From Perkinsus chesapeaki ATCC PRA-425 (Eukaryota > Protista > Perkinsozoa): DNA of 64,000 bases. The notes beneath the pieces are model-generated. The model made no database searches, was not told where the DNA came from, and was given only the letters and a program-made list of their open reading frames with translations. This document shows positions 40,788-56,156 of the stretch, piece after piece. Position numbers and translations under genes: made by a program. Every line of letters begins with the position of its first letter. Within the stretch, counting starts at the first letter, position 1. The DNA lies in the NCBI GenBank assembly GCA_013115145.1, contig JAAPAO010000069.1:29800-93799 (forward strand), written 5' to 3'.

Positions 40788-43000
40788 TCATGACGTATTG
40801 ATACTGCCAGCCTTACCATATTCATCTCCAAGTATCGTACTCTCCTTCTCACCCCCGGACCCCAAACCAGCAGCTTGCTCCTCCTCTACACGCTGACTTC
40901 CCGCTAGCATGCCACTAGATGACGGTGAACCTCCAACAGGCGGGGACTCGGCTGCCGCTGTTGACGAATTGGCAAAATAGGAAGCCAAAGATTCGTTCAT
41001 GTCTCTGAGAAAAATGACCCTGTCTTCCACTTCCCTCCCGAGCAGTAACCTGTGCATACGGTTGTATTAGCATAGCTCAACTCAATATCTTACACAACGA
41101 TCAACTAGACCAAACCGGTATACAGTGCCACTTAACGCTCCTTGAGCCCGAATTAGTTTCCGCTTCCTCTCCTTTTAAGCCTTTTCAAATTGACTTCACT
41201 CAACACCCATAAAGATTCTAACATCCGACAACTGAAGACGATAGTGACTGTTATAATGATCGTAAGTAATAAACGTTAATAAAGCATGCCATGCTACGCA
41301 GTGTTCCCCTCATCCTCTGGGCCAGGCAAGCGACTGAAAAAAACTCGCCACTAAAATAACATAGCGCTTAAGTCTGAGCTCACCTGAGAAATCTAGGTAT
41401 AGTGCCGCTGTCCATTGCCGCTGCAAAAGCCTCCATTCTTTTATCCTTCTCCGAGTGCACCCAGTCCCGGAGCGTATGCACCCTTGCTAGCTCTTGCTGT
41501 TGCCGAATGTCATCTCTCCGATCGATATTACCCACCTAAACATAATACTCAAACCAGAACTGACTCAGACTTCTCGTAAAACGGAACGATGTAAATAGAC
41601 GAATGAACAACTGAGACGGTAGAGTACACACGCCCTGTTTTAAAAAAGTATCGATTTTCGAGCACTTTTCCATGGCCCAGAAATGCCGGATGAGATGTTA
41701 TCTCACTGACCGTCTGCGCAATCGGTTTCATACTAATTCGCTGTCCGTTCGCATCCCACAGGTATTGCGAGGAAGAGCTAGAGTAAGCCTCGAAAGGATG
41801 CCCTTGTCTAGCCGCCTCACTACCCTTTTCCTTTCCTTATTATCCAATCTATCCTGTCGTCTCTGCCTAGCCTGTACACGCTCCTTTATCAATGTCCTCC
41901 GCATATGCTTGCAGTCATCCATTATATCTTCATTCAGGTCATCTGCCTTCTTATGACACTCCACAGCCTTCATCACAGCTTCCGTTGCCCGTATCAGCCA
42001 GTCCTGAACAGCGTCACCAATGACGCCCACTGCATGCCACAAATCTGAACCCTTAGTCGATCGATCCACTTCCGTCAGATACCATTCGAGACCCTAGGGT
42101 ATCCTACCTGCTGTCGAGCTATAATCTTCACCTCTCGACATCGATCTTTATAATCATTTTCGAGAGCTGCCATCCTCAACCGTCGCGCCCTAGCCACATC
42201 GCCACTCAGTTTAGCCTCCCTATACGCTTCCTTTTTGGCAGCTATAGTCTCATCTTCCGCCTAAGAAAGCAGCGATGAGCACCGTGTATGTGCTGGAGGC
42301 TGCCAACACAGATAAAATAGAGATTCATCGCCAATCATGCAAGAATGCTTGCTAATGAAGCCACTGAAGTTCGGTAGACTTCTCCCTAGCTGGCACATCA
42401 AGTCCCAATTGCCTTCAAATAGGCTGCGATTAAATCCCAGTCCCCTAACCCACAGGCAAATGATTAGTCTAAAAACATATCCCGATACTAACACTATCCT
42501 GCATTCATTAATTTCCAACCTCGCTATGCCCATCCATTGCAACATAACCAAACCCTTTAATATCGCACTTTCCACAGTTTCTGTTTCCTCTCTAAACGCT
42601 CTCGATGCTTCTTCCTTATATCATCTTCTCGCCTCTGAACATTAGCCTCCCTTTTACTGTCCAAATGGCCACCTGCCAACATACACTCCCATATCCTCAA
42701 CTGCTCCATGTCCCAACTCACCGTCTGCTCCATCGGAGCCCTGCAGAGATGGTGCTGCCACCATGGAGGCAATCCTCAACTTGACAAATAACAACATCCC
42801 TCCTGCTCTACTATATCAGATGCGGACGGTTTCGTCCCGACAAGAATCTTAACGCTCGCAGCTCTACCTATTACAGCCTCCCATATCATTGCCTGTTGGA
42901 GTGATGCAGCCGAGCGCCCCGCAATATCGTCCTAAGGTGTCCTGCAGAGCGCTACCTTGTCGATCAAAACCAGCTCCGAAGATTCCTATGAGCTTCCGAT
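40788..43000 (-). CDS. Hypothetical multi-exon protein(s), partly charged/helical
   Basis: Collinear minus-strand ORFs (42557-42772, 41728-42069, 40788-41057) with coding-like composition. No family recognised. Confidence 0.3.
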
Positions 43001-46788: not shown

Positions 46789-49271
46789 TCATCCAAGCTT
46801 GACACTCTTTTTGACATTGGTTCGTAGACCAGTAGCTTCGCCCGAATAAGTACCATCGGCGTTTCCCTCCCGCACTTCCTGTACTGCACCCTTCCGACGC
46901 TTAAGAGCTCGCTCGTATCGATTCCTGTTCTTGACACGAGCGTTGCGATCCTCCTTCTTGCGCTTCCGCGTAAGACCCTTGTTCTTATTAATGGCGTAAT
47001 TGGTCGAACGGAGATCAACTTCATTCTAAAACACGACGAGTTTCGACACATTCCACCATGTCCCAAGCCACTACCTCCTCCTCAGGCATGAAGGCCCGCG
47101 CCTTGGAGGCCAGCGCCGATTTCTTAGCGACCCTTTTGGCCTCACGATTCTTCCTCGCCTTTCGCATGAGGGACGGCTCCATCTCTCCCTCGTCTTCACC
47201 ATCATTATTCGGCACCTACGCATAGCAACAATCATTACTAACTCTTATGCTCATAAAGAGAGCAGATACGACCCGCAAGATACCGGCTCCCCCCTTAATC
47301 TCCATATAGCCATCCCTACTACCTCAGCCGCCCGTTCTTCCTCCTCTTCCATGGCTGCCCGTATATCCCTCATAGACATACCCTTACGTATCTCAACATC
47401 ATCATCTCCCCCAGCCTTACGACCAGAGGCGGCTTCCTCAACCTATACCAAAGATTCTAACCCTTCTCCTACTACAATCCTCACCTGTTTGGCCGAGTTT
47501 AGAATATCCGCAAGTGCCGTCCTCCTATCGACCAAGTCCTCCACTTCAGCAACCTCATCTAGACTAACTGATCCAGCTCCAGCGTAACTACGATAACGAA
47601 ATAATCCCACTATATCACCCGTTAACGTTCCCTAATTATGACCCTTCCAAACAAAGTGAAGGGAAACCTTCCGTGGAGTTCGATAAAGCGTGGGTACTTT
47701 GGAAATACGTGTAGAAATCCCCAGCTTAATATTACCCCTTTCCTCCCTTAACCTTGGCACGGAGCTTTCCAAGGCTCTTCTTGCTAGTCTTCATCTTAGG
47801 CTGTAACATCAATTCTGCAGCATCTTCCTCATCATCCCTAGCTGCCATCTTCGCCAAGATATTTTCCTGGTCAAGTTGATCGCCGTTGACAGCCTTTTCG
47901 GGTTTGCTCTTGCCCAGAAGCTTCACAAGATCCGCCTTCGACACCTTCACTGATACCTCTCCCTCTTCCTCCTCAACGCCCTCCTCGCCATCTTCACTCT
48001 CACCCTCACTACCATCAATTTCTTCATCCTCCGGCACGGCCATGTTAACCCCAAGCCTAGTCAGTACCTCATCAAGATATCCCATATCAGCATCAGCCTC
48101 TGCCGTCGCAGCTCGACTTAGCAGCTCCTCAATCTGGTCCTGCACTCCTTCCTCAATCGGTGTCAGCCTCTCCAGCATCGCTTTAGTACTCGCAATCTTG
48201 CCGATTACGGGATGCTTTCTAACGCTTCCTCCCTTAGCCTTCAACATGAAGTAGTAGCTCAAGTAGCTCAGATACGACAGCAGCAATTGAAGCTTCGCCT
48301 CCACAAACGTCATACCACCCTTGCCCGCCGGTGGGGGCATCTTGCGGACGGCATCCACGAGGTCTCTTGCTTCATCCGCCAGGTTAAGGGCGCCCTCGCG
48401 ATACTGCTGAACCAGAGCCTCGAGCTCCGGACTTTCCTTCAAAGCCAACCTCCGTCGTTCACTCTGCGAAAGACCGCCCTTCAGCTTCTTGGGAGCTACA
48501 GCAGGTCCCTTAAAACTGATATCTCCGACGGCGAAGTCAAAGTCATCAGCATCGTCCTCGGAATCCTCCCCCTCAGATGCTGCTGTCTTCTCCTCAGTAG
48601 AGGCTTCGGTATGAACACCTTCGTCCCCGGCAAGCTCTTCCACCTGGGAGACACCTCATTGTCCGATAAAACGTAGACCTTCTTTATTACCAATTCGGCA
48701 GTCTTCTTTGGTAGCAGCTTAGCTCGAGACAAAGCAGCTTTCTTGGCCTCCTCTAACTGGAGCTCTTCAGCCTCGGAAGATTCATCTTCAGATTCGCTAC
48801 CTGAGCCCCGTGGTGCCCCAAACCCGGTCCATACCCTTCCCGGTAGTACCATAGAAATCTCTGTCGCGTTTCCCCCAAGCCAAGCGATCATCAGTGTCAT
48901 CTGCCTTTCCCTCTTCCTCTTCGGCAAAGGCCTGCCACAGTAACCAATTTCATCGCCCCCGAAGTCCTGAGATGATGCGTACCTCAGCGACCTCCTCTTG
49001 AGCATCATCCTGGCTTCCTATGCTCATAACGTCGACTTCCTCATCCCCCTCGAGATCAGAGAAGTCATTCCTTTCATCTAAACACAGTCAGCAATCCCTT
49101 CATCAAATCCGGAGGTCCTTGGCAGTACCATCTCCACCGATCATATCGAGACCAAGGTCACTTGAAGCATCGGACAGTACTGAAAGCAAAACCTACAAAA
49201 TCTACAGCTCCACAATGCGCACCATCTTCCATTGGCTCGACTTGCCGTTTGCCTCCCTTACGCTTCACCAT
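46789..49271 (-). CDS. SAS10: SAS10/UTP3 U3 snoRNP (SSU processome) protein
   Basis: Acidic N-terminus, a Sas10/Utp3/C1D domain (GMTFVEAKLQLLLSYLSYLSYYFMLKAKGGSVRKHPVIGKI) and the Sas10 C-terminal domain (DRNARVKNRNRYERA..YSGEATGLRTNVKKSVKLG*). Confidence 0.92.
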
Positions 49272-49815: not shown

Positions 49816-52015
49816 ATGTCCTCCCCTTACAACGAAGCCTTCGTGGAAGAGGTCACCAATCGGGTAATCAGCTAGTCCTTACATCGCAAACACTCATCAT
49901 CTCATCATTCAGGCAACTGCCTTAATAAACCGACGCTTCGATTTCCTAACGACAGAGTTAGCTACTCTAAATGAGCGCCTTGCCGCCCAGCTCAGAGATC
50001 GGCGACGAAGCCTGAGTAGTCAGGCTGATGACGAGGACCTAGAAATGCCGACTCGTGCTAGCTCGAGAGATGTATCATATATACAAGCGACTGCAGGACC
50101 GGCCTCACCCGACGAAGCTCCATTCGTGGATACCTCACCTGGGACTCGGTCGGACCTCGGCTCACCTCGCCGTAAGAATCGGCCTTATAGAGAGCGAAAT
50201 TGTGATACTTTCCGCCGACAGGCCTCCAACTTCCCAACGCCTTCAATAATGCCCCCAGCGAGTTTCTGGCTCCCGCGGCACAACTCACTAAAGATTCCTT
50301 CCAGACATCGCAGCGAAATCGTGGTAACATAGCACTAGAGAGCTACCAGTCGCAGAAAGGTTTCAGGTGAGAGCTCCTCTGTTCTGCTGGAACCACCTCA
50401 CCATGGTCATTCGCTCAAGTAACGGCTTAGGGCCATTCTCGCCACCACAAACACTGTCAGGCGCCTTGTAGGAGGGAATCACTTTCCAGATGATATTTTC
50501 CGAGGGATAGGGAAGCTTATCGGCATCATACCGTGGAGCACGCAGACTCGACTTCACCGTGCTCTCTCAGTAAGGGTTTCGGATGCCCATGGTGCCTCTT
50601 GAATACAAGGGGGGAGCGATTTACTGCAGGCCCTGTACATGTTGTCAATTTCCGCCGTCCTGATCTACTGTGCTGGGAAGAAGCTTACTATCCTGATCAA
50701 CGGCGGAAAGTTACTTGCGATCAACGCCATTGTGAGATTCACATCTTACCTGTCTCCTCCATCTCGACGTTAATGTCAGATTAATGACCTATTAGCCTTT
50801 TACGCGCACGTCTATCTTGTCCAGTCGTTTTGGGAAGAAGATAACATGTAGGCGCGCGAGTACCAGGGTCGTCGGAAAGTTGTCCAGTTGATAAGCATCG
50901 ATAACATGAACCTCTACAAGGTGTATACAATCTTCAATTTCAGGATTGTCACTATTTATGAGTACCTAGAGGCCAACAACGTGAGGATATCATCCTGGTC
51001 AAGACGGCAAAGCCTACTCGGGGGTTTAGCGGCCATCTACATCATCAGCTTTACAATCTGTAAGCTGCTAACCCTCTCTTAAGCTGCAGTGTCCACTTTG
51101 ATTGGGTGCCCTTTCTCACACCTTCACACAACTTTACACTATCTCAGTATTGTGTGGTACCAAGAAGCTATCTGTCTTTAGTTTTGGGGAAGGCCTCGGG
51201 CAGATCATGATAACAGCAGTAAGTTACTCGGCTGCACATCTCAAGAATCGGTTGAACTAGGTTATGCTTTTCTGCGCCACAGTAGTATCCTTCGGCTCTT
51301 TCGCTACCGGCAAGTTGGAGAAGTTAGCTCAGGAGGACCAATCGCTCGAAAAGATTTTAATCGACTTCAACGCGCTATGTCATCTAATGCACAAAGTAAA
51401 GCCGCCTGATGCCATGTGTCTATCGCTAAGGTAGCCTCAGGCCTCCCGGAGCATCGAGCAGCCTGTCCTCGTAATGGGGAACGTCGGCCTAGCCTCAGCG
51501 GGTCTCATAGTGTTCGTCACCCTTAGAGAGATGCCTTTAGCACAGTGCAGTGAGTCTCCCAGCTGACTGAGTTATCAGTGAAACTATGTTCAGTTCCCAA
51601 AATCGTCGCCACGTCCTTCGTATTGGTGACATCGGCGGCTCTACTATACGTGGTTGCCAGCGTGAACCTCAAATTTAAGCATCTACCTGTGGCTGCCAGT
51701 ACGAATAACTTTGGCCGTGAAATCGACCATGATAAATGGTGTGTTGTGAGTTTAATGAAAATGACTGAAGGAGGCTTCGATCTGTAAGTTCATCACAGGA
51801 AACTGGTTCGGGAACCACCCTCGGACGAGCAGCATCTAGTCGGTTTGGTTACTTTGCACTGCTCTGCACGATGAATTTTCATCACGAGTGCTTGGATTGT
51901 AGCTCGCGCCCTCAGGTACGGCTCATATATATCACTTGAAACGACAATGAAGATAACTTGGTTGGTGATAGTATCTCTCAGCTCCATGCTCATGCGAGCA
52001 TCGGGGAACATGTAA
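49816..52015 (+). CDS. 7-TM protein, gustatory-receptor-like / DUF3537-like (7TMIC candidate), paralog 1
   Basis: Hand-spliced model: MSSPYNEAFVEEVTNR|ATALINRRF.. ..IGKLIGIIPWS..RALS|ALYMLSISAVLIYCAG..AI|INDLLAFYAHVYLVQSFW..M|..SLLGGLAAIYIISFTI|LLCG..GEGLGQIMITA|VMLFCATVVSFGSFA..LEKILIDFNALCHLMHK|ASRSIEQPVLVMGNVGLASAGLIVFVTLR..|IPKIVATSFVLVTSAALLYVVASVNLKFK..KWCVVSLMKMTEGGFDL|YGSYISLETTMKITWLVIVSLSSMLMRASGNM*. Seven hydrophobic segments are present. The family assignment is from remembered pattern similarity only. Confidence 0.7.
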
Positions 52016-52612
52016 ATGTCCATGTGTAGTTCTCACCGCTCCAGACTAATATCTGGTGGTAACTTGAAGATCTACTGTTATTACAACCTTCCTTATGTGG
52101 TTATTTGACCTCTCGATGTATTAATTGGCTTGCAACTTACCTACCAGAGCCGGTATCGTCGGTGTTCCCATTCCTAAGTCATGGAACAACCGACCACCAT
52201 CTGGCATTCCTTGTGTAATGTCCATGATCTAGTGCAGCACGTCGTAAAGCATCAATCTCATGAGCCTTTTTTGTTGAGCTGCCCTCGGCATCGTTATCTT
52301 TTACCTTCACGTACTGACCTGCTACTTCTAGACCTTTCCCGTAGGTGAACTTTATGCAGTTGCGCATCTTGTTTTCATAGTAATAGCTTTAGTCGTATTA
52401 TATTATCACTTGTCCTTAATGTCCTTATATTGATATATTAACTCGAATAGGCCGTATTAACGAATATAAATTTATATTATCATTATACCTGATATCATAT
52501 ACTTAGAAATTTTTAGACATCGCCTTCACGGTGAAGGTTGAAGGAGGTGAAGCCTTCACCTTCTCATCATTTCCTCACTACACCTAGGCCATCTCGGTAG
52601 TGTATATTTTTC

Positions 52613-55600
52613 ATGACAATGCCTTCTCGCGTGACATCCCTCACGCGGCATCCAACGTATGATCAAGAAGCACTGTCTAAGGTTCTGTGCGATAAGGTTG
52701 GGCTCTCCCGAGCCAGCGCAGCATTCGGTTAGCTTTGTGTTTGTGGCAGATTGACTACTTGCTGGACCACCGGCTCGGCAACATTCGAGAAGAACTCCGG
52801 GTCGCTGTTGACGCATGCAGAACATTGCACAATGAACGAACTATTAAACGTCACAAAACCACAGACGATCTCGATGATGCGCGAGAAGCGCTGGAAGAGT
52901 CATCGGCGCAGCCCAATGCCATCAAAGACCGACGAAAGCCGCGGAGCGCATCCATGTCGACGATCGCTACGTCTAACAGCCTTCAAAAAGAAAATACCGA
53001 ATGGCTGAAATTGGACATGGGCGAGGCAAAGGCAAACTCTTATCTGGATCGGGTCCTTGGCGCCACTGTTGCTCCTGTTCCGGAAGAGCTGTCACGGAGT
53101 AATATGTTACAGGCCCGGTCAGCCATTATAACCTGGCTCCGCTCAGATACCGGTACGCAGACGCTGATTGAAGAGTTCGAAGTGGATGGCAAATCATCTT
53201 TAAGTGAGCAGCATTGGCCGTTGCTTGGAGAATAACGGTTGAAGAATTACACTTTCTTTGCTCTCCGAGCCTCGGAGTCCGAGGGCTTAACATCCTCGAA
53301 AAGAATATATAGCTATCTTACTACCATCTACAGGTCCATTGTGGCGTGGAGTCAGCACCGAGCTCACAGTCGGCAAGAGGACCCGGTCGGCATCAGACGA
53401 GCTGCATTCCAGACCGTCTGCCTATTCTCGACTGTTCAAATCGAAAGACAGACGACCTTTCGAACCCACCAGGCTGCGCAGTGCACCCAGTCGTAGTCCC
53501 TCAAGTCTCGATCGGGCCTATGAAAAAGTATTGCGCAGTATGCGAGGCGGAGCGCTTCTGCCAGCTGTAGTGAGACAAAGTAGCCCACAGATGTCCGTAG
53601 AGGACATTACTGAGAACATGGACTTTGTATCGTTGGGGCTTATGAATGTATTGAAACGCGACGACGGTGATCATGATGGTGATAATCAAGAGAAGTATCC
53701 AATAGAGGCTGTGCTTGAAGCCGGTCAGATGGGACAATGTGGCGAAGATCAATTTCATTCGATATTTGGTCTGCAGCGCGAAGTTGTGGAACACCTCAAT
53801 CAGCAGTAGGTCGTCCAATCGGTGCAGTGCGTGTACCGTGTGCCTTTCCATTTGCGTGAAGATCCCTGCTAATGTGCTCTTTTATTTTTGTTTGTCATCG
53901 TCTATTACACAATCACTCCAATTCACTCGTATATGCTTTGACGCAGTACTTCAGTAAATAGTTAGCTCAGTTTCACTCTCGTGTATCTATGCCATTATCA
54001 GTTCCTCGTAGTAAAAGACACATATTGACCACAGGCTTGAGAATTTGAGTTGGACCTTTTCAGAATGCTTCAGAGCTTTCAGCCCGATGCTAGCAGCAGG
54101 AAGTTCAGTTGGCTCACTTTAGCGCTCAAGATCTTTGGACTCGTTATGTGGAGCAGAAGAAATTTGAAAAGGCGGTGCATTTCGGTATGTCATCTAACTT
54201 ACCGTTTCTTTCTAGTCTATTCCTCATGCCCTAAGATTATTCTTCGGAAGATACGTACAAGTGTTATCCCTAGGCTTGTCTATGACCCTTGGTGCCTCGC
54301 CAGCATTTATGACTTCGCCTCCGGAACTCAAATTTTGTATTTACTGTTTCGTGGGAACCTACTAGTTGGATTGCTCGTATGCTCGAGTTATCGGATAAGG
54401 CATTGCTGTGAGAATTTCATATTTCTTTCTCCCTTCGCGTGCTGCTGTTTCGGCACTTTAGAGAAGTGCGGTTCTGTTTATAAAGCTGTAATTTAATACA
54501 TTACGCATCATAGTGTTCCTAGTCCATTTCCATAATCAATACAGGTGCCGTTTTTGGATCATTTCAGGTCCTCTACATGATCCCTTTTACTACGGCTCCA
54601 CTAGTGGTGACCGTCTTGGAGCTAATTCGCATTCCGAAGAGTAATCCTTTGACGGCAATTGTGATCGGTGTAAGTTATACTTCGCTGAAAATGGGCATCT
54701 TTCCTTAGCTACATGGTATGGTAGCGCTATATTGTCGATTGTATTTAATCTGGTGGCTCGGACACAAATGCAGCGCGTAGGCCAAGTACAGGCGTCAGTT
54801 GTGTGGCTAGTGTGTCGTTATATCAGGAGCCACGCGATGAAGAAGTATGCCCGTCATCACATGTTTGAGGAACGTTGGTGGAATCTATCGATCAAGTATG
54901 CGTGCCTCACTGCCGCTGCCAGCATAGCTTACAATGCATGTAGCCATTCCCACTCTTTCCCACTTGCAATCCATCTTAGTGCTGGTATCGTCCATGCCCA
55001 CAGTTGGTGTCATTCTTGCTGAGATTCTCGAGCAGATGGACATCGCCCTGGTAAATGCAATGCCTAATATCAGCGCTTATACCCTGACCACTCTTGTAGA
55101 TGGTTTGGTTTTCGGCTTTGACGATATCATTCTGTTCGCTGGCCGCAGATGATTTTGCTCGGCGCGCTGTGTGTACTACTCTACTTGACGGCATTATTGT
55201 CCGTTATACTATACTGTGCGCTGTGGTTCGGAAGGTAGGCCATAGGCGGGCATTGCGGGGCAAGGCTTCGTGAGGAGCAACACTAAATTGGTTATTGAAA
55301 TGGTGTACATTGTATAGTCTTACACACTAACATCACGCAGCCCTAACACAAGTCCATACACAGTGCATGGGATACATAGCAATCTCCTTCATCTAGAAGT
55401 GTGAACACGGTGCAAACCCCAGACGCTGGGACTGAAACGTGGACGATGTTATGGGCTTGTGACCGAGAGACCGACCACGAGAACCGCTAGTCTAACCAAG
55501 CCAATTTCGGCGTTGGACTATAAACCCACACACACACGAGAGCCCCGCCCAAAGACTCACCTTCGTCGTGTTCGTACCATGCACCAGCGCATGTTACAGA

Positions 55601-56156
55601 ACAGCTATATCATAGCTCTTTCCCGCTTCAGTCAAGCAGTTGTTATTTTGTCATGCATTCAGGTATCTACCTCAATCGAACAAGCCATTGTATTTCTTAC
55701 TAATTTCGGCGCGGTTACGATGGTACTGGTGCTGTTAGTGGTCTTGAGTGGCGTATCAGTGACGGATAAGGGTAAGTCGATGGTGTTAAATCCGACATCA
55801 CAACATCCCTATTTGTCAGTTGCGCAGTTCATAGCGAGTTGTTCGCTACTCGGAATGGCTGTGGCGTTGCTTCACATGATTGCCACTGTGAATCTCAAAT
55901 TTAAGCGACTACCGATGATTGTGAATACTATGAATTTTGGCTGTGAAATCGACCATGACAAATGGTGCGTTGTCAGTTTTATGCAGCTCAACGAAGGAGG
56001 CTTCTACCTGTAACTTCACCATTTCCGCTGGTGCTGTCCAATGGCCCCTTCAGATACGGTATGAGGCTGATGCGAGAGGCTGCGATGAAGGCCCTATGGC
56101 TCATTGTGGTGTCGGGCTCCTTTATGATCATGCGAATGCTCGGCTTTGCCCCATAG
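52613..56156 (+). CDS. 7-TM protein, gustatory-receptor-like / DUF3537-like (7TMIC candidate), paralog 2
   Basis: Homologous exons with matching intron positions: LKIFGLVMWS..RCIS|VLYMIPFT..; LLVSS..ILAEILEQMDIAL|MVWFSALTISFCSLAA..LDGIIVRYTILCAVVRK|VSTSIEQAIVFLTNFGA..|VAQFIASCSLLGMAVALLHMIATVNLKFK..KWCVVSFMQLNEGGFYL|YGMRLMREAAMKALWLIVVSGSFMIMRMLGFAP*. N-terminal exons 53235-54050 are not fully resolved. Confidence 0.65.

Follow-up and report, generated by a model that had tools for sequence, protein, structure and literature searches.

The 64,000-nucleotide (nt) stretch of DNA analyzed here (the window) comes from Perkinsus chesapeaki ATCC PRA-425, a flagellated protist that parasitizes clams, and contains, on its plus strand, two adjacent genes, designated A (49816-52015) and B (52613-56156). 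We consider it very probable that they are real, intact and transcribed paralogous genes whose products have the fold of the seven-transmembrane ion channels (7TMICs), with seven transmembrane (TM) segments and an intracellular N-terminus. This reading is strongly supported by the predicted fold, the topology and the conservation of introns. A tandem pair of intact gustatory-receptor-like 7TMIC genes had been proposed in an earlier note on this DNA, and the proposal is borne out by splicing, shared introns, predicted fold and topology. The genes are not hidden, as that note had it, since both are annotated in GenBank as hypothetical proteins. They add new members, or a small new clade, to the already known 7TMIC superfamily, which comprises insect odorant and gustatory receptors, gustatory-receptor-like proteins of animals and protists, and the plant DUF3537 proteins. 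They also lead to the correction of one gene model, but do not constitute a new kind of protein.

Exon structure, shared introns and transcripts

The list of open reading frames (ORFs) between positions 49000 and 57000 shows nothing but fragments on the plus strand, and their scripted joining yields two complete spliced reading frames, which confirms the earlier description of multi-exon paralogs that appear as scraps in the ORF track. Every intron of the two genes is of the GT..AG type; most are 39-132 nt long, and three introns of gene B measure 258, 383 and 428 nt. The two proteins share 29% identity overall and 55% over the exon encoding TM6 to TM7a. The last eight introns (introns 4-11, from the pre-TM1 exon to the stop codon and thus across the TM region) occupy identical alignment positions and phases in the two genes, which is hard to explain unless both genes are real and descend from one common ancestor.

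The product of gene A has 483-486 amino acids (aa), depending on one choice in the N-terminal region. The gene has the following features:

49816-52015, plus strand: gene A, 7TMIC paralog, 12-13 exons; ATG at 49816, TAA at 52013-52015, complete ORF by scripted splicing
49816-49863 and 49913-50171, plus strand: exons 1-2
50222-50323 and 50367-50418, plus strand: two exons in the public model, or else a single exon, 50222-50366
50461-50569, 50630-50731, 50780-50847, 50944-51059, 51148-51218, 51261-51395, 51441-51549, 51594-51783 and 51916-52015, plus strand: later exons
50461-50569, plus strand: pre-TM1 exon, translated as the amphipathic helix IFRGIGKLIGIIPW, aligned to the helix L-x-x-x-G-h-h-x-W that every family member has
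50570-50629, plus strand: intron between the pre-TM1 and TM1 exons, 60 nt, GT..AG, skipped in the X8 RNA contig
50732-50779, plus strand: intron between the TM1 and TM2 exons, 48 nt, GT..AG, skipped in the X8 RNA contig
51594-51783, plus strand: exon for TM6, its cytoplasmic extension and TM7a (ASVNLKFKHLP...NFGREIDHDKWCVVS...EGGFDL), the most conserved block of the family
51784-51915, plus strand: last intron, 132 nt, phase 2, at the same codon position and phase as the last intron of gene B
51916-52015, plus strand: final exon, predicted pore helix TM7b (YGSYISLETTMKITWLVIVSLSSMLMRASGNM and stop codon), missing from the public protein

RNA data for P. chesapeaki are sparse. A 264-nt contig from an RNA run labeled as P. 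chesapeaki (X8) covers 50457-50569, 50630-50731 and 50780-50824 and skips exactly two introns of gene A, whereas a 363-nt contig from a marine 454 metatranscriptome (X6) covers 52599-52694 and 52748-52994 and skips intron 1 of gene B. The RNA check of splicing suggested in the earlier note thus confirmed three introns; the remaining junctions have no RNA support. The N-terminal region of gene A exists in two versions, with either the tiny introns 50324-50366 and 50419-50460 of the public model or a single 94-nt intron; the single mismatch in the piece of the RNA contig that covers 50457-50569 fits the public two-intron version slightly better.

Gene B encodes 673 aa by scripted splicing, with all introns GT-AG:

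52613-56156, plus strand: gene B, 7TMIC paralog with a cytoplasmic N-terminal region of ~370 aa, 12 exons; ATG at 52613, TAG at 56154-56156
52599-52600, plus strand: AG acceptor of spliced-leader trans-splicing, 12 nt upstream of ATG 52613
52613-52696, 52750-53203, 53334-53805, 54064-54184, 54568-54669 and 54709-54776, plus strand: exons 1-6
54827-54939, 54980-55050, 55100-55234, 55663-55771, 55820-56009 and 56054-56156, plus strand: exons 7-12
52697-52749, plus strand: intron 1, 53 nt, GT..AG, skipped in the X6 metatranscriptome contig
53334-53805, plus strand: exon 3, with the motif SIFGLQREVVEHL at its end; in dinoflagellate homologs this motif lies ahead of the membrane domain
55820-56009, plus strand: exon for TM6 through TM7a (ATVNLKFKRLP...NFGCEIDHDKWCVVS...EGGFYL)
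56054-56156, plus strand: final exon, TM7b (YGMRLMREAAMKALWLIVVSGSFMIMRMLGFAP and stop codon), a hydropathy peak; the same junction is present in the P. olseni ortholog P0027

The X6 contig starts with 18 unmatched letters, CGTAGCCATTTTGGCTCA, which end at 52599 and, together with the genomic AG at 52599-52600, match the 22-nt spliced leader of the dinoflagellate/Perkinsus type (PMC3101222). The mRNA of gene B is trans-spliced 12 nt upstream of its ATG, and the 5' end of the gene is thereby fixed. As to the form of this leader, it reads ...CCATTTTGGCTCAAG, as in the canonical dinoflagellate sequence, and not as in the CCATCTTGG version of P. marinus, whose spliced leader is ACCGTAGCCATCTTGGCTCAAG (PMC3101222); P. 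chesapeaki may use the dinoflagellate spliced leader (DinoSL) sequence, or the 454 library may have been primed with DinoSL.

The public record describes gene B as one gene with the same ends and a 657-aa hypothetical protein, and P. olseni keeps all gene B exons in order; the P. olseni annotation splits the N-terminal and membrane parts into separate genes, whereas that of P. chesapeaki has one gene. The end of exon 3 aligns with the motif S(I/V)xIFxLQxxVA of the relatives P0006, P0011, P0012, P0018 and P0024. In several relatives this motif is located ~60 residues ahead of the membrane domain in one continuous transcript ORF, which supports the joining of exons 3 and 4 across the 258-nt intron and, hence, a single gene B.

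The 428-nt intron 9 of gene B contains a ~50-nt stretch (55488-55537) where the summed contig depth in the genomic run X1 reaches ~4050, compared with ~88 in the flanks, and where many X1 contigs terminate. The stretch itself occurs once in the window and holds an imperfect palindrome, TAGTCTAACCAAGCC...GGCGTTGGACTA; it probably represents a dispersed element of high copy number, or else the end or footprint of a transposon.

Predicted fold and membrane topology

No sequence link to the 7TMIC entries of Pfam or the PDB was obtained, so that membership in the superfamily rests on predicted structures, which provide the decisive evidence for it. Residues 150-454 of the public gene A product (P0001), modeled by AlphaFold2 from a 25-row alignment, yielded a mean local confidence (pLDDT) of 81.4 and a predicted template modeling score (pTM) of 0.77. 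The model contains TM1-6 and TM7a (model residues 286-298), with TM4-6 helices of 40, 45 and 41 residues. Its best 30 matches among the Swiss-Prot models of the AlphaFold DB are all insect odorant or gustatory receptors (ORs, GRs) or nematode proteins of the GUR type, and its alignment to Gr43a ends at residue 394, just before TM7b of Gr43a, the part missing from the public protein. The model of a complete relative, P0006 (residues 22-461; pLDDT 82.1, pTM 0.83), shows TM1-6, TM7a and TM7b, with TM4-6 helices of 54, 42 and 41 residues and TM7 split by a linker into 387-399 and 413-438. Its top 24 Foldseek matches in the PDB are all GR, OR or Orco structures, after which the probability collapses, and its matches among the AlphaFold-DB clusters begin with uncharacterized proteins, which by accession look like Symbiodinium entries, followed by receptors of the gustatory and odorant types and by T. 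brucei Q57U78. The structure prediction and Foldseek comparison recommended in the earlier note therefore gave the expected type of match, and the long TM4-6 align along the corresponding helices of GRs and ORs.

An ESM Atlas single-sequence model of P0001 has template modeling scores of 0.77-0.78 to clusters of DUF3537, 7tm_6 and 7tm_7, and language-model features, both of the whole domain and of a 115-aa C-terminal piece, point to GR, DUF3537 and 7tm_7 clusters. The earlier label "DUF3537-like" is thus appropriate for the fold, but has no counterpart in a Pfam match of any kind at the sequence level. Among the language-model feature clusters found with the membrane domain of gene A (P0001), the second-ranked one consists of hypothetical proteins, and Nucleocytoviricota account for 56% of those of its members that have a record, a hint that proteins resembling 7TMICs may occur in giant viruses.

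The features that define 7TMICs are seven TM segments, an intracellular N-terminus, loop asymmetry, long TM4-6 and a split TM7 (PMC9998090). All seven segments are seen in the P0006 model, while the gene A model has TM1-6 and TM7a, with TM7b located in the last exons of the two genes. Helix boundaries of the homolog model were transferred via the alignment, and the orientation was assigned by rule from the counts of lysine and arginine residues, which are 13 inside versus 2 outside in gene A, 17 versus 2 in gene B, and 10-14 versus 1-4 in nine relatives. In genes A and B, the extracellular loops EL1, EL2 and EL3 have 5, 0 and 9 aa, and the intracellular regions IL1, IL2 and IL3 have 18-19, 53 and 51 aa. 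The residue counts and the short extracellular loops fit an intracellular N-terminus and the loop asymmetry of 7TMICs (PMC9998090). The long TM4-6 anchor is present in both the gene A and the P0006 models. The TM7a/TM7b split is seen directly in P0006, whereas for gene A it combines a modeled TM7a with a TM7b exon aligned to the family.

All sequence motifs quoted in the earlier note were recovered, some with a changed interpretation. The pre-TM1 pattern K-x-x-G-x-x-x-W is present as GKLIGIIPW in gene A and LKIFGLVMW in gene B, and the pre-TM1 segment of gene A forms a short helix ahead of TM1 in the structure models. The blocks A(S/T)VNLKFK and KWCVVS...EGGF.L, and YG...MK..WL..VS across the last junction, are found where they were described. 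The segments quoted as a TM4-TM5 loop, LEKILIDFNALCHLMHKASRSIEQ in gene A and LDGIIVRYTILCAVVRKVSTSIEQ in gene B, do exist but form no loop in the models, in which they continue TM4 and TM5 as helices into the cytoplasm and are part of the anchor domain. In the split TM7, KWCVVS does correspond to TM7a, but EGGFxL/YG belongs to the TM7a-TM7b linker and not to TM7a. For the statement that G-F-x-L-Y-G is an established 7TMIC hallmark, no source was found in the literature read, where the only diagnostic motif is (T/S)Yhhhhh(Q/K/E)(F/L/M) in TM7b of GR and GR-like (GRL) proteins (PMC7746228).

A family common to perkinsids and dinoflagellates

A TM5-TM7a profile was searched against 1.84 billion cluster representatives and gave 26 matches at E < 0.001, 24 of which are true relatives; the other two, P0009 and P0022, are false positives of the repeat-protein type. 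All 24 relatives carry VNLK(C/F)KRLP....(N/D)FGxEIDHD(K/R)WCV...GF ~35 residues before the C-terminus. The corresponding exon of gene A, 51594-51783, seeded the profile and encodes the TM7a helix of the models. The named sources are P. olseni (P0002, P0027, P0028, P0035) and Prorocentrum cordatum (P0034), and the other relatives come from MMETSP, EukProt, Logan and JGI transcript assemblies with dinoflagellate-like composition. Word-indexed protein searches with P0001, the family alignment and P0027 as queries added one new member only, the Prorocentrum protein P0034. The family is alignable from the pre-TM1 helix to the C-terminal end, and genes A and B belong to this small, unnamed and Pfam-less family common to perkinsids and dinoflagellates. 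The N-terminal tails, which are ~165 aa long in gene A, ~370 aa in gene B and in relatives up to ~750 aa, are rich in Ser and Arg and include RRxS-like sites; from this composition we speculate that they are probably regulatory.

In a maximum-likelihood tree of the family, the Perkinsus sequences form a clade (100/98), in which gene A lies, on a very long branch, apart from the group of gene B and its P. olseni ortholog (89/58). Based on this position, the A/B duplication probably predates the split of P. chesapeaki and P. olseni, although long-branch effects make this unsure. A gene A ortholog was sought beside gene B of P. olseni and was not found there. On the P. olseni contig JABAHT010000229.1 (L002 4115-7282), a 572-aa Aminotran_5 gene is located between Sas10/Utp3 and the gene B ortholog, where P. 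chesapeaki has gene A, and thus the local synteny differs between the two species.

Proposed mechanism and alternative explanations

By analogy with the solved insect receptors, the extended parts of TM4-6 would combine with TM7a into a cytoplasmic anchor that holds four subunits together. TM7b, the product of the last exon, would line a central cation pore, and this pore would open once a ligand is bound within the bundle, in its extracellular half. The anchor block VNLK.K.LP....FG.EIDHDKWCV is the most conserved part of the family. One may further propose that the perkinsid-dinoflagellate 7TMIC clade consists of working ligand-gated channels by which flagellated stages (Perkinsus zoospores, dinoflagellate swimmers or symbionts) sense host or prey chemicals, a proposal that we consider rather unlikely. 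If true, it would make these proteins the first functionally tractable non-animal 7TMICs and perhaps a way to approach how a shellfish pathogen finds its host.

A number of observations weigh against the assignment of genes A and B as a 7TMIC pair. Pfam searches with ten exon translations returned no family at E up to 10, and those with ten full-length relatives including P0001 returned no 7tm_7 (PF08395), 7tm_6 (PF02949), Trehalose_recp (PF06151) or DUF3537 (PF12056) at E up to 1; the family profile matched no chain among the PDB sequences at E up to 10. In the window genes, TM7b is outside the modeled part and was judged by alignment to the family. The TM7b motif is not preserved, with at most one of the four positions kept in TWLVIVSLS of gene A and LWLIVVSGS of gene B; its (T/S)Y is kept in some relatives (P0015, P0017, P0024). 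The RNA coverage consists of two short contigs, and the last intron of gene A has no RNA support. Finally, it is by analogy that we infer channel activity, tetramers, conduction and a chemosensory role.

The most serious alternative accepts the 7TMIC fold but holds that the proteins do not act as ligand-gated chemosensory channels; we regard it as quite possible, if somewhat short of an even chance. They could instead act as channels of an organellar or flagellar membrane, as light or temperature sensors like nematode LITE-1, or as a non-conducting scaffold like the uncharacterized PHTF branch. Outside animals, 7TMICs are known as predictions only, and for none of them has a function been demonstrated (PMC9998090). 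This state of knowledge, the missing pore motif of animal GRs, the long Ser/Arg-rich tails suggestive of intracellular regulation, and a conservation that is strongest in the cytoplasmic TM6 extension and TM7a, and not in the extracellular half, the site of ligand binding in insect receptors, all favor this explanation. On the other hand, a tetrameric channel would depend on such a conserved anchor domain, and the whole fold is retained, including the split TM7. The presence of two copies per genome neither favors nor excludes a sensory role.

Another alternative, which we find unlikely, concerns gene A, which could be a decaying or truncated duplicate with a protein that ends after TM7a and a last exon that is a relic. 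On contig JAAPAO010000069.1 of GenBank assembly GCA_013115145.1, where the stretch around it agrees letter by letter with the window from 39816 on, gene A is FOL47_009671, a 454-aa hypothetical protein (P0001) with its end at 51787, which our exon list reproduces exactly given the two-intron N-terminal version and a stop at the in-frame TAA (51785-51787) after ...EGGFDL. The public stop, the last intron uncovered by RNA contigs, the longest branch in the Perkinsus clade (2.63 versus 0.48 for gene B), the odd amino-acid composition and the lack of an ortholog at the syntenic place in P. olseni are all in line with decay. However, this TAA overlaps a consensus GTAAGT donor, exactly at the codon and phase where gene B and its P. 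olseni ortholog are spliced. The frame downstream of the intron is open for 32 codons and ends at the aligned position, with 14 of the 32 residues identical to the last exon of gene B, and it aligns with the C-termini of transcript-derived homologs. In addition, gene A keeps its frame and all eleven upstream introns intact and is represented in part among the RNA contigs. Because the TAA lies within a donor used in the two related genes and the 32 added residues match homologs, we judge the public model to be incomplete, and gene A is most likely an intact gene whose annotation lacks the final exon (51916-52015) and hence the predicted pore helix TM7b.

The weakest alternative, that the resemblance to insect receptors is convergence or a modeling artefact, with an unrelated seven-helix family packed alike by AlphaFold, could draw on the identity of only 7-12% to GRs and ORs, the empty Pfam and PDB profile searches and the shallow folding alignment of 17-25 sequences, but is very improbable given that two different predictors agree on the fold, that a language model working on sequence alone leads independently to these families, and that the N-terminus inside, the long TM4-6 and the split TM7 are unusual features that recur together.

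Comparison with known systems

The insect receptors Gr43a, BmGr9, Gr64a, Orco and MhOR5 (7tm_7/7tm_6) resemble the Perkinsus pair in the seven helices, the N-terminus inside, the very short extracellular loops, the long cytoplasmic TM4-6 anchor, the TM7a/7b split, and an intron just before the TM7b exon. The Perkinsus proteins differ from them in the low identity and absent Pfam match described above, in TW or LW in place of the TYhhhhhQF signature, in N-terminal tails of 150-370 aa (up to ~750 aa in the dinoflagellate relatives), and in having two genes per genome, not dozens.

Protist GRLs have been described in Thecamonas, in chytrids and in the chromerid alveolate Vitrella brassicaformis, which has six (Benton et al. 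2020, PMC7746228), and trypanosomatid GRL1 carries N-terminal MORN repeats (Benton & Himmel 2023, PMC9998090). Like the Perkinsus pair, these proteins are recognized mainly by topology and predicted structure, and the protist GRLs have a partial TM7 motif only and, in some cases, long N-terminal extensions; the block VNLK.K.LP....FG.EIDHDKWCV is undescribed in those papers. The plant family DUF3537 (PF12056) has a template modeling score of 0.77, by query, to the ESM Atlas model of P0001 and shares language-model features with it, but differs in its much longer IL3 and in the absence of a PF12056 match at E up to 10 (exons) or 1 (ten relatives). The 7TMICs of stramenopiles, alveolates and Rhizaria (SAR) have been placed, as a hypothesis, nearer to DUF3537 than to animal GRs (PMC9998090).

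A 2023 screen (Himmel et al.) added thousands more 7TMICs in unicellular eukaryotes. The main text of the 7TMIC papers searched (including PMC7746228 and PMC9998090) makes no mention of Perkinsus or dinoflagellates, and the literature search gave no paper that joins "Perkinsus" with "gustatory receptor-like"; the perkinsid and dinoflagellate proteins may nevertheless already be inside published 7TMIC data sets. The picture of an ancient and widespread superfamily (Benton et al. 2020, Himmel et al. 2023) is unchanged by the Perkinsus genes. What they provide is a concrete set of Perkinsus-dinoflagellate proteins for asking whether the mechanism of the tetrameric channels is older than animals, a corrected model for FOL47_009671, and the signature VNLK.K.LP....FG.EIDHDKWCV for finding members that Pfam misses. 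P. marinus is culturable and transfectable.

Neighboring genes and strand composition

Scans of the locus for tRNA genes and Rfam families gave no match. The plus-strand GC skew is strongly negative (-0.17 to -0.30) and sustained over approximately 20000-50000 of the window. Part of this region belongs to a dynein heavy chain gene on the minus strand, which has a product of 5418 aa and extends to position 42764; it is followed by three more minus-strand genes for a 382-aa unknown protein, a hexapeptide-repeat/GMPPB-like protein and Sas10/Utp3. The skew flips where the plus-strand genes A and B start, and for this reason it looks like a coding-strand composition bias.

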